A DNA stretch of 64,000 nucleotides, taken from contig NC_134030.1 of NCBI RefSeq assembly GCF_964204645.1, positions 21,722,210-21,786,209 of the forward strand, written 5' to 3'. Position numbers and translations under genes: made by a program. Shown here piece after piece: positions 373-27,122 of this stretch; the stretch's first letter is position 1, and the number at the start of each line of letters is the position of its first letter. The notes under the pieces were generated by a model. That model made no database searches. It was not told the DNA's origin and saw only the letters and a list, made by a program, of their open reading frames with translations. Origin of the DNA: Tubulanus polymorphus (lineage: Eukaryota > Animalia > Nemertea).

Positions 373-3300
373 GTAAGTAACAGATTCATTTGTTGTATTT
401 GAGAAATCTTCCTAAGAATAACAGTATGGGTGGATCTAGGACTTTTCTAAGGGGGTGGCTGACAGCTGAGACGCACTGAATCAGCGAACTGAAGAAAATT
501 TAAGAAAAGCTTGAAAAATCCTCGGGAAAATGGTGGAATTCGACGGCATTCGAGCGAAATAATGACATCCTGCTGAGTCATAGTGCCCGCGCGGGTAGTA
601 TGTGGTGTTGGTAATTCTAATGAAATACCCGCACGATTCATGGGGAAACGTATTTATCAAAATTTTGTCATTATAATTTACAATTTTGGTTTCGGGAATT
701 TTTGACACGGATTGGGAAAAATTCAGATAATTGAGATTGAGAAAATGACTGTTTACCGGACACAGATTATACGGCCTAGCGGAATGGCTGTAACCGAATG
801 ATAAGTGGTCTCATATCGGGTGGAGCTTCACTGGTAAAATGTATGTATAAATGTATGATGAATTCGCTACTGTTGTTCTGGTTCCGAGGCTTATTTTACT
901 GCGGCGAATTCGGACGCGAAATAGCAGGACCTAATAACAAATATCGGGTGGAGCTTCACCAACATAATGCATGTATAATTGTATACGGCGATGGATTCGC
1001 TGCGCTACTATAAGTTCCGATTCTGATTCAGAGGCAGAGAATGAACAATCTCATGGGGCCTACTACGAACGATCCCAAACCATTTTCATCTTTTTAATTC
1101 AACAAACAGTGCGAGTTATTAGAAACGTTACATAAGTCAATGTGATAAGTTTGCTGATCTTGCGCTGAGACATGCTTGCTCGTGGGGGGGGGGGGGGGGG
1201 TTCACGGTTGCGAATTTGATTCCTCAATCGAGTTAAACATGAACAGCGCCGATATTTTTGATCAAAGTAATGATTTAAGGCGAAAAACCCTTTTCAAAAT
1301 GTTTCGGAAGGCATAAGAGGGGGTGGGGGGGGTATAGTTAGCCACCCTATTCACCCCCTAGATCCGCCCCTGATAACAGTATAAAGTTTTCCCAGATACA
1401 ATACAAACCCCAGTCCTAGTAGTCCAGACCTATCCGCCCTTAGTATAGTCGCGACCAAGGCGGGAATCTCACGATGTCATCAGGTTCGAATCCCTGCCGA
1501 GCGAGGAACGTGATCGAGTCTGACGATGTCATCAGGTCCGAATCCCCGTCGAGGGAGGATGGTTCTTGTCTAGTACCTAGCCGTCGTTCCCCAAACAACT
1601 GTTGTAGGGAACCCGTAACGACGACTGGTATTCAGACTAGGATGGCTCAACCTCTGACAGGGTTTCAGAACTTTGCTAGGTCAGATATAAGTTTGCTAAG
1701 GCAGTATGCTTGTAAACAACCTTCACTAATGATTTGTCTTTTATCAGATTTTGAACCAGTTTACAAGAAATCCAGTGAAAATGAAACAAATGCAGCGTAT
1801 ATTGTAACAGTTAATAGTTACCCATTGACTCAACAAGTTACATGTGACCCTCCAGCTGTCGTTCAAAAACTATCAAACTATCAGTGGAATATAACGATAC
1901 CTATCGTAAATAGTACCACAACTGATTATGAAGGGCGATGTTTGGCTGACGGTATTAATGAAAGGGTCATTGATGTCGCTAGTTATCATAACGCCGGTCC
2001 AACTGATGAACCAGGTAAGATTGCGGGTCACAACTGGATGGATTTTACATGAATTGGAACAACCAATTCAGGTCCGGATCCAACATCAATTCAATCAATC
2101 AATTTAGGGAGCGCTCAAATAGTACGTACATTCTTAGAGGGGATGGGGATCGTGGAAGTACTAGGGGTGGGGGTTAAAAAAACTGCAAACCTGACCATAG
2201 GTATTATTTGAATACTCCCTTACTAAATGTAATTCATTATCTCGATTAGTCGTCACATCACTGAAGTCTGCTGTATTCTTTTGTCCCAATTTGTGTTTCT
2301 AATTCTTTTTACTAAAGTCAGGAGATGACCGCGTCGTAATTCGAGCTGAGCTTAGTTTAAGTCGTCTAAATCTAAGTCGTCATCTGGATAAGTCGTCACA
2401 TTACTGCGATTTTCTGAGTCAATTTTGGTTTCCGATTTAATTCGTGGATTTGGATACGTCAACATAATGGCAATAGTAGTGGAGTCTCGTGATATCATCA
2501 GATTTGAATCCCTGCACAGGATGACGTGATTCTTAGTATTGACTGAACTCAGCATATTTCATTATTTATCACATTCAAATATCACTTAACAAAATAATTT
2601 ACCAAAAATAACTCTACTTTACTTTATTTAGATGCTATTTAAGGAAGGAAAAAATACTTTTGACTTTTCAATCATTAGTTAATAGTTAAAACGTAATTAT
2701 TTCTAGCTTCTATATAATTTAATTTAATTGCTGATATGCTTGAATTTCAGTTTTGTCTTCGATTTAATTGCTGTTATTTTTATCACTAGTTACAATAGAA
2801 CAGCATAATAGCTTCACATGATTTAATATAAATTGCTGATGAATTCCAGATGAAGGGAATGGAGGCAGAGTGTTTGGTGCTGTAATCGGTGTACTGATAT
2901 TATTGATTCTAATAATACTGTTAATAATGTGGCGTCGTGGCTGCTGTAAGTTTGACCTAAAACCATCATTTAATCTGAAAAACAATGATAATCAAACTGC
3001 AGAATCAGAATACTGTATTTTTGTGTTTGGTTTTTATTGGGTTGTTTTGTCAGGTGATTGTGCATCATGTAGGACAAACAGTATTTCTGTTTTCTAATTA
3101 ACAGTACCGTGTTTGTGTCCGAAATCTAAAGATGTGATTGAATTGTTGCGTTGGACAAGTGAAACCTGGTATGAAAAAGGTAAGATTCTCTCACATGATT
3201 TACTGCGCATATTCTCAGATATCGGTTTGATAATGTTTAGGTGTTGTTTTCTCTTTGTAGATCATGAGAATTGGGTGAAAACACGTGACCAACCGCGACC

Positions 3301-27122: not shown

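Follow-up and report, generated by a model that had tools for sequence, protein, structure and literature searches.

The stretch of DNA analysed here (64 kb, the window) comes from Tubulanus polymorphus (Nemertea) and holds two genes with Ig-like and transmembrane (TM) exons, LOC141907671 (copy 1) and LOC141907917 (copy 2) in RefSeq. The splice model was obtained by a frame-blind scan for AG and GT sites with manual curation, followed by mapping of RefSeq proteins onto the window. The RefSeq models are an annotation independent of the scan, and the proteins of LOC141907671 (P0061 and P0045) and LOC141907917 (P0064, P0047, and P0063) match the window letter for letter. A hydrophobic first exon (signal segment) and one TM exon are read from the sequence in these genes, whose parts are the following.

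Copy 1 (LOC141907671)
Up to 5 kb upstream of the window, + strand: signal exon and two further Ig-like exons (RefSeq mapping)
34-372 and 1748-2014, + strand: Ig-like exons 3 and 4, phase 1-1 (RefSeq mapping; Pfam C2-set_2, Ig_2, and I-set on paralogs)
2850-2945, + strand: TM exon, 96 nt, phase 1-1, with a basic/Cys stop-transfer end
3054-3068, + strand: possible 15-nt exon, not in RefSeq, which would leave a 36-nt intron
3105-5169, + strand: juxtamembrane segment, tail exons 1-3 (RefSeq mapping; exon 3 missing from several paralogs)
5307-7202, + strand: putative helical unit U1, exons 4-11, with the boundary placed from a motif and the rearrangements
7555-10265, + strand: putative helical unit U2, exons 12-20, containing a 156-nt exon
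10349-13026, + strand: predicted helical unit U3, exons 21-27, without exon 28
11815-12753: minisatellite, 22 bp x 43, in an intron
13266-14373: minisatellite, 14 bp x 79, in an intron, occupying the site of the lost exon 28
14682-17119, + strand: predicted helical unit U4, exons 29-35, including a 21-nt alternative exon at 16742-16762
17329-21788, + strand: second U3 (exons 21-28) and exon 29, an internal block duplication that copy 2 lacks
23302-25607, + strand: predicted helical unit U5, exons 36-43 (RefSeq mapping; AlphaFold model)
26977-27122, + strand: last exon, Ser/Asp/Ala-rich, ending T-Q-V, at the position of the NACHT-LRR exon in sister genes

Copy 2 (LOC141907917)
36548-36662, + strand: signal exon (RefSeq mapping)
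38341-38631, 38731-39066, 39855-40190, and 40675-40944, + strand: four Ig-like exons (RefSeq mapping)
41672-41770, + strand: TM exon, left out of RefSeq isoform X3
42960-60668, + strand: tail exons 1-44 (RefSeq mapping)
42960-44418, + strand: linker
44558-46592, + strand: putative unit U1
46776-49541, + strand: putative unit U2
49625-52802, + strand: predicted unit U3
53074-55747, + strand: predicted unit U4
57947-60565, + strand: predicted unit U5
60636-60668, + strand: local duplicate of exon 43, with two acceptors in RefSeq
61355-61560, + strand: last exon, Ser/Gly/Asp-rich, ending T-V-V

The array of microexons is confirmed in both copies. The X1 models carry 53 post-TM exons and a tail of 923 aa in copy 1 (P0061), and 45 exons and 826 aa in copy 2 (P0064); the first-pass annotation had counted 53 and 46, and only the first number holds. 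Its other statements on the anatomy agree with the exact RefSeq mapping: all internal tail exons of both copies are bounded by AG and GT, measure 3n, are phase 1-1, and join into a single stop-free ORF; the six length differences between orthologous exons of the two copies are all multiples of three (6/6); and the tails end in T-x-V, being T-Q-V in copy 1 and T-V-V in copy 2. The internal exons have a median of 48 nt (range 18-156 nt), and only 9/52 in copy 1 and 6/44 in copy 2 are of 30 nt or less. The size range first proposed, 15-84 nt for most exons, stands at its upper end (50/52 and 42/44 do not exceed 84 nt) and falls at its lower one, where the 15-nt candidate at 3054-3068 (copy 1) and 42910-42924 (copy 2) is absent from RefSeq and its use would leave an intron of 35-36 nt. 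The oversize exons are one of 156 nt at 9196-9351 and one of 90/105 nt at 15243-15332 (copy 1) and 54243-54347 (copy 2). The neighbouring Ig-TM gene at 29839-33201 has intron phases 1, 1, 2, 0, and 2, and because of these mixed phases the phase 1-1 array is taken as specific to the family and not due to chance.

This neighbour (+ strand, P0011, 374 aa) has six exons, and its tail bears repeated Tyr motifs (YxxM three times and more acidic Tyr sites), which are longer in its relatives P0012, P0015, and P0017; its Ig exon shares 53% identity with Ig 3 of the main family. Also, the introns of the window carry a palindromic, MITE-like element of ~110 bp with many genome copies (5448-5559, 23720-23831, 44699-44810, and 58371-58482), short repeats with a 51-bp period between Ig exons 3 and 4 (1464-1560 and 40305-40636) and, inside the second U3 block of copy 1, a degenerate retroelement-like fragment at 17788-18560, which would comprise a gag-like Cys/His knuckle (18054-18398) and a protease-like remnant.

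Predicted fold and units of the tail

Comparison of the tail with Pfam, PDB sequences, the Foldseek PDB and viral sets, a VIA-wide fold search, and an Atlas shape search gave no match, the fold part being based on the U3-U5 model; the best structural match of the VIA-wide search (Z 6.7) is a generic three-helix bundle, sigma region 2. AlphaFold returns an all-helix model of the whole tail with a pLDDT of 38, and for exons 21-43 (the last 370 aa) the best of five models reaches a pLDDT of 78 and a pTM of 0.62, the other four lying at 37-60. The confident model covers U3-U5, U1-U2 being without a usable one, and in it three alike units of 7-8 exons each are predicted, with the order long helix, short strand, helix, long helix, short helix, and short strand. 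This is in line with the long helical tail without recognisable domain described at first, and the structure check then proposed (AlphaFold and Foldseek) likewise yielded no confident match to a known family. As modelled, the tail is a new, orphan helical-repeat region.

A short-helix/Gly motif is alike at the ends of exons 11, 20, 28, 35, and 43, and exon lengths recur near the unit ends (54 and 36-45 nt, then 18 and 48 nt). Because motif and lengths recur at these five exons, the tail can be read as five units of 110-165 aa and 7-9 exons each, whose common descent would rest on the model and on the rearrangements described below. By sequence, the homology between units is weak (hhalign E 0.007-0.6), and an exon-anchored test of it was negative, with 10014 of 20000 random sets equally good. 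Two candidate identities were discarded: a SAM-like nature of the unit-end motif, which neither the model nor Pfam bears out, and a relation to dynamin-like GTPase stalks (Sey1 3HB, GBP_C, and GVIN1), an ESM Atlas lead of 0.81-0.89 (<0.9) with no Pfam or fold match. Moreover, the earlier idea of about one helix per exon is not supported by the model of exons 21-43, where 11/22 junctions fall within helices against a background of 50% and the long helices cover 2-3 exons; since junctions hit helices at the background rate, exons are not helices.

Paralogs, rearrangements, and NLR-linked loci

RefSeq proteins of T. polymorphus were retrieved with one Ig exon as query, and paralogs beyond the fetched loci were compared as RefSeq proteins only. 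The tail is present in at least 14 paralogs, and 14 RefSeq proteins span most of it with 75-82% identity; a sequence search found no homolog of the tail outside T. polymorphus. The loci form a tandem array on C6 (21.69-22.10 Mb), with others at 18.07, 22.27, and 22.77-22.83 Mb, on C9, and on C19. The ectodomain consists of four Ig-like exons, one exon per domain, with Pfam scores above the cut-off in P0001 (Ig_2 36.6 bits, I-set 38.1 bits) and weak, below the cut-off, in P0002 and P0003. The same ectodomain is found on short tails in P0005 and P0008, and a distantly related one on Tyr-motif tails, such as that of the gene at 29839-33201. Variation between paralogs is alike in ectodomain and tail, with 82% identity for Ig1/Ig2 and 81-88% for the tail units.

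Two further features concern the membrane-proximal and extracellular parts of some paralogs. P0001 (LOC141906641, Ig-TM-NACHT-LRR) has an enlarged ectodomain of about 11 Ig-like exons (1170 aa). P0046, P0055, P0065, and P0003 carry Cys-rich juxtamembrane inserts of 50-90 aa after the TM, with CxC and CCC, also seen in NACHT-linked genes and absent from both window copies; palmitoylation or metal binding would be possible.

The paralog tails follow the order linker-U1-U2-(U3-U4)n-U5, with n being 1 or 2, and single exons (3, 17, and 28) are missing in some of them. No block junction (35>21, 29>36 in copy 1, 43>28, 19>28, 34>43, and 11>36) is more than one exon away from a unit end, and neither is a truncation that follows exon 35; the unit ends are partly drawn from these same rearrangements, those of U3-U5 being placed independently by the model. 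Genomic rearrangement, more than mix-and-match splicing, seems to be the main source of variation in the tail. Local duplication has given rise to exons at 16742, 60636, and 37743-38388. The first of these, the 21-nt alternative exon at 16742-16762, is an exact copy of the 3' end of exon 34 and its donor. The last, immediately upstream of Ig exon 1 of copy 2, contains eight 82-bp units, each formed by a 42-nt phase-1 exon start and a 40-nt GT-AG intron, of which only the last acceptor is used in RefSeq, and illustrates how such phase-1 exons can arise.

NACHT was found neither in the tails nor anywhere in the 64-kb window by Pfam and an open-frame scan. In P0001, P0004, and P0069 the ectodomain is joined to NACHT without the helical array (Pfam NACHT E 3e-14), and the NACHT region lies in a single open frame of 840-1000 aa at ~18 loci; the LRR signal of these sister genes (LRR_14 E 0.008-0.035) is below the Pfam cut-off. 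At three loci, however, the helical array stands between the TM and the NACHT-LRR exon (C6 22.26-22.28 Mb, C9 0.306-0.323 Mb, and C19). Exons 1-19 and 28-34 are intact there, and two of these loci also have exon 43; every splice site is preserved, all lengths are 3n, and stops are absent. The C19 locus is an exception in that exons 5-10 are missing and the Ig part appears damaged. The acceptors are all CAG or TAG with T-rich tracts, and a phase-1 acceptor opens one NACHT-LRR frame of 905, 957, and 910 aa (C6, C9, and C19); also, RefSeq P0051 has helical exons spliced onto NACHT. In the window genes, a short Ser/Asp-rich last exon occupies the position of the NACHT-LRR exon. Since Ig-TM and array are shared and lead to NACHT-LRR at three loci, the window genes belong to a modular Ig-TM-(helical repeats)-NLR family, as members devoid of NACHT. 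The end exons of U3 and U5 are retained in the NLR-linked copies, which may accordingly derive by deletion from a five-unit gene. An unrooted tree of U2 (exons 11-19) does not group the three NLR-linked copies together, so that it does not order the NACHT-linked and NACHT-less states.

Other NACHT-LRR paralogs lack Ig and TM (P0070, P0071, P0076, and P0079, on C8, C9, and C56) and bear N-terminal RHIM-like motifs of the form (I/V)Q(I/M)G, four of them in P0079. Their identity as RHIM was not accepted, the motifs being a regex match with no Pfam match.

Interpretation and comparison with known systems

With moderate confidence, we propose that constitutive splicing makes the tail into a rod of helical bundles, which would act as a spacer or scaffold, and that the uniform phase 1 both reflects and permits genomic module exchange. 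The two window genes would belong to a Tubulanus family of single-pass Ig receptors that is young and has expanded in tandem. In this family the modules (signal, Ig domains, TM, Cys-rich linker, helical-tail exons, NACHT-LRR exon, and terminal exon) would meet in phase 1; because every module joint is phase 1, these could be duplicated, lost, or recombined without frameshift. Mostly constitutive splicing would yield four to eight helical-bundle units in a row, each of 110-165 aa and encoded by 7-9 small exons, as a rod-like submembrane spacer or scaffold that in three sister genes would link the TM to the NLR module. In the window genes, a short exon of low complexity, with an end of the class I PDZ type, would take the place of the NLR exon, so that within an immune-type receptor repertoire they would be members lacking NACHT and probably regulatory, anchoring, or adhesive. 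The exon anatomy, the family, the module exchange, and the positions of the rearrangements are direct observations and the U3-U5 fold is a prediction, whereas constitutive splicing, the homology of the five units, the spacer role, and the immune function are what we infer.

Less likely, although worth weighing, is that the helical units signal actively from the effector slot of NLRs, their homotypic binding serving to pair with, recruit, or block the NACHT-LRR sisters, the window genes being a paired receptor, adaptor, or decoy. The array is directly N-terminal to NACHT in three intact genes, the slot that RHIM-like motifs occupy in other paralogs, and N-terminal domains of NLRs are usually effectors (PMC3879445). 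Nonetheless, profile and fold searches with U3-U5 showed no resemblance to Death-fold, TIR, or HeLo/MLKL bundles, other Ig-TM-NACHT-LRR genes do without the array, and the number of units varies freely.

The idea that the tail is diversified combinatorially by exon skipping, as a cytoplasmic counterpart of MEG and Dscam diversity with a different scaffold per cell, appears improbable. Skipping as such is possible because stops at single-skip junctions are rare: all exons are symmetric and the ORF is kept in 51/52 single skips, so that the caveat raised at first, that skipping creates stops, is correct and of minor weight (1/52 single skips and 28/1378 possible joins). The RefSeq isoforms examined (1-4 per gene, 90% cluster representatives) include, over 11 genes, nine skips of tail exons (two each for exons 26 and 28), TM skips, and acceptor shifts of 3-18 nt, and some paralogs lack single exons. 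However, each of these isoforms is only one event away from X1, and some of the skips may be reads cross-mapped from exon-less paralogs. Of the sequencing runs examined, none recorded as RNA contains the window, a possible RNA run gave no match to it, and two others look like genomic DNA. Moreover, the junctions are not at helix ends, and skipping an exon would cut through a helix of the predicted bundle; where paralogs differ strongly, the change lies in the genome and at a unit end, the predicted folded unit being 7-9 exons. That combinatorial skipping in vivo yields many helical scaffolds, and in sister genes also sets the link between Ig sensor and NLR, is slightly less probable still; if true, this would add a new way for receptors to diversify, the inside of an immune receptor being varied by splicing. 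Apart from this, three paralogs (P0063, P0056, and P0066) show an in-frame skip of all or part of the TM exon, which predicts a secreted Ig plus helical tail.

We regard as very unlikely that the tail is a nearly neutral accretion, in which local duplications spanning splice sites give birth to small phase-1 exons that are tolerated, as the frame is preserved, and have no specific function. The three exon births described above would fit it, and constraint on the tail is weak, since dN/dS is 0.63-0.91 across five loci (0.74 for the tail of copy 1 against that of copy 2) and some paralogs have lost single exons; divergence is 9.3% in exons against 11.5% in flanking introns. A local reversal occurs at exons 10-11 (7029-7202 versus 46419-46592), where 9/87 bases differ and the 87-nt intron between them is identical (0/87), and a faster divergence of exons than introns, true there, is false overall. 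Against accretion, ~170 exons of five loci contain no stop or frameshift, U2 has a dN/dS of 0.29, a confident fold is predicted for U4-U5, and the rearrangements are in register. Least probable of all is an Alr-like family for self-recognition or cell adhesion and not microbe sensing, the PDZ-type end tying the tail to the cortex: Ig-TM paralogs arranged in tandem, variable in their ectodomains and with exchangeable tails, recall Hydractinia Alr (PMC9546547), and a T-x-V end is found in 8/14 proteins checked, but the same ectodomain is linked to NACHT-LRR, which points to immunity.

Returning to the rod of helical bundles, a conservative reading is that of an orphan repeat domain with about eight phase-1 introns per unit, placed in the N-terminal slot of membrane-anchored NLRs and in their NACHT-less sisters. 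The family amounts to a kit for receptors: ectodomain, linker, and signalling output are swapped as phase-1 cassettes, and the young paralogs show exons being born and lost and blocks being duplicated. It would offer a test case for the origin of symmetric microexon genes and for whether surface Ig binding can control an NLR. The view that no described family has this design agrees with our literature search, which within a limited library found no receptor with such a tail, and the tests for membership place the window genes outside the NLR, MEG, Dscam-type, and Alr families.

Arthropod Dscam1 has ectodomain arrays of mutually exclusive duplicate exons; it shares with the window genes an Ig receptor and a possible splice diversity, whereas the tail exons here are consecutive, different, and all in the main RefSeq isoform. 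Symmetric phase-1 exon arrays are also known in tropoelastin and titin PEVK, and small tail exons in PECAM-1, with occasional skipping, but these encode disordered or short regions and the window tail is a post-TM chain of predicted helical bundles. In Schistosoma MEGs the exons are symmetric, and the likeness to the window genes extends to short symmetric exon runs in lineage-specific, multi-copy, and fast-evolving genes. MEGs are small secreted proteins with 10-20 exons, mostly of 15 nt, and proven isoform diversity (10.1101/2023.06.21.545858). On the other hand, the window genes have 45-53 exons with a median of 48 nt that encode a cytoplasmic, predicted folded region of 830-920 aa, and their product is not small and secreted, the array being post-TM in a protein of 1300-1400 aa.

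Hydractinia Alr comprises clustered single-pass Ig-like receptors, genes and pseudogenes, with one exon per ectodomain module and alternative tails (PMC9546547). The cluster of Ig-like receptors, the one exon per ectodomain module, the divergent and alternative tails, and the mixture of genes with pseudogenes are common to both families; however, Alr tails have ITAM/ITIM, whereas the window family has no ITAM and at most one ITIM-like match, its sister genes have NACHT-LRR, and a search with the Ig exon gave no sequence match to Alr. TM-bearing NLRs are described in anthozoans (PMC3879445), and AjNLRC4 of the sea cucumber Apostichopus japonicus is a membrane Ig-TM-NACHT receptor with two TM segments and no LRR (PMC8699970; PMC13133943). 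AjNLRC4 differs from the present family in these two traits and in that a helical-repeat linker is not described for it, and the window genes lack NACHT. Nonetheless, in its domain layout as described, AjNLRC4 is like the sister genes of the window copies, with an Ig ectodomain, a TM, and an intracellular NACHT in one protein.
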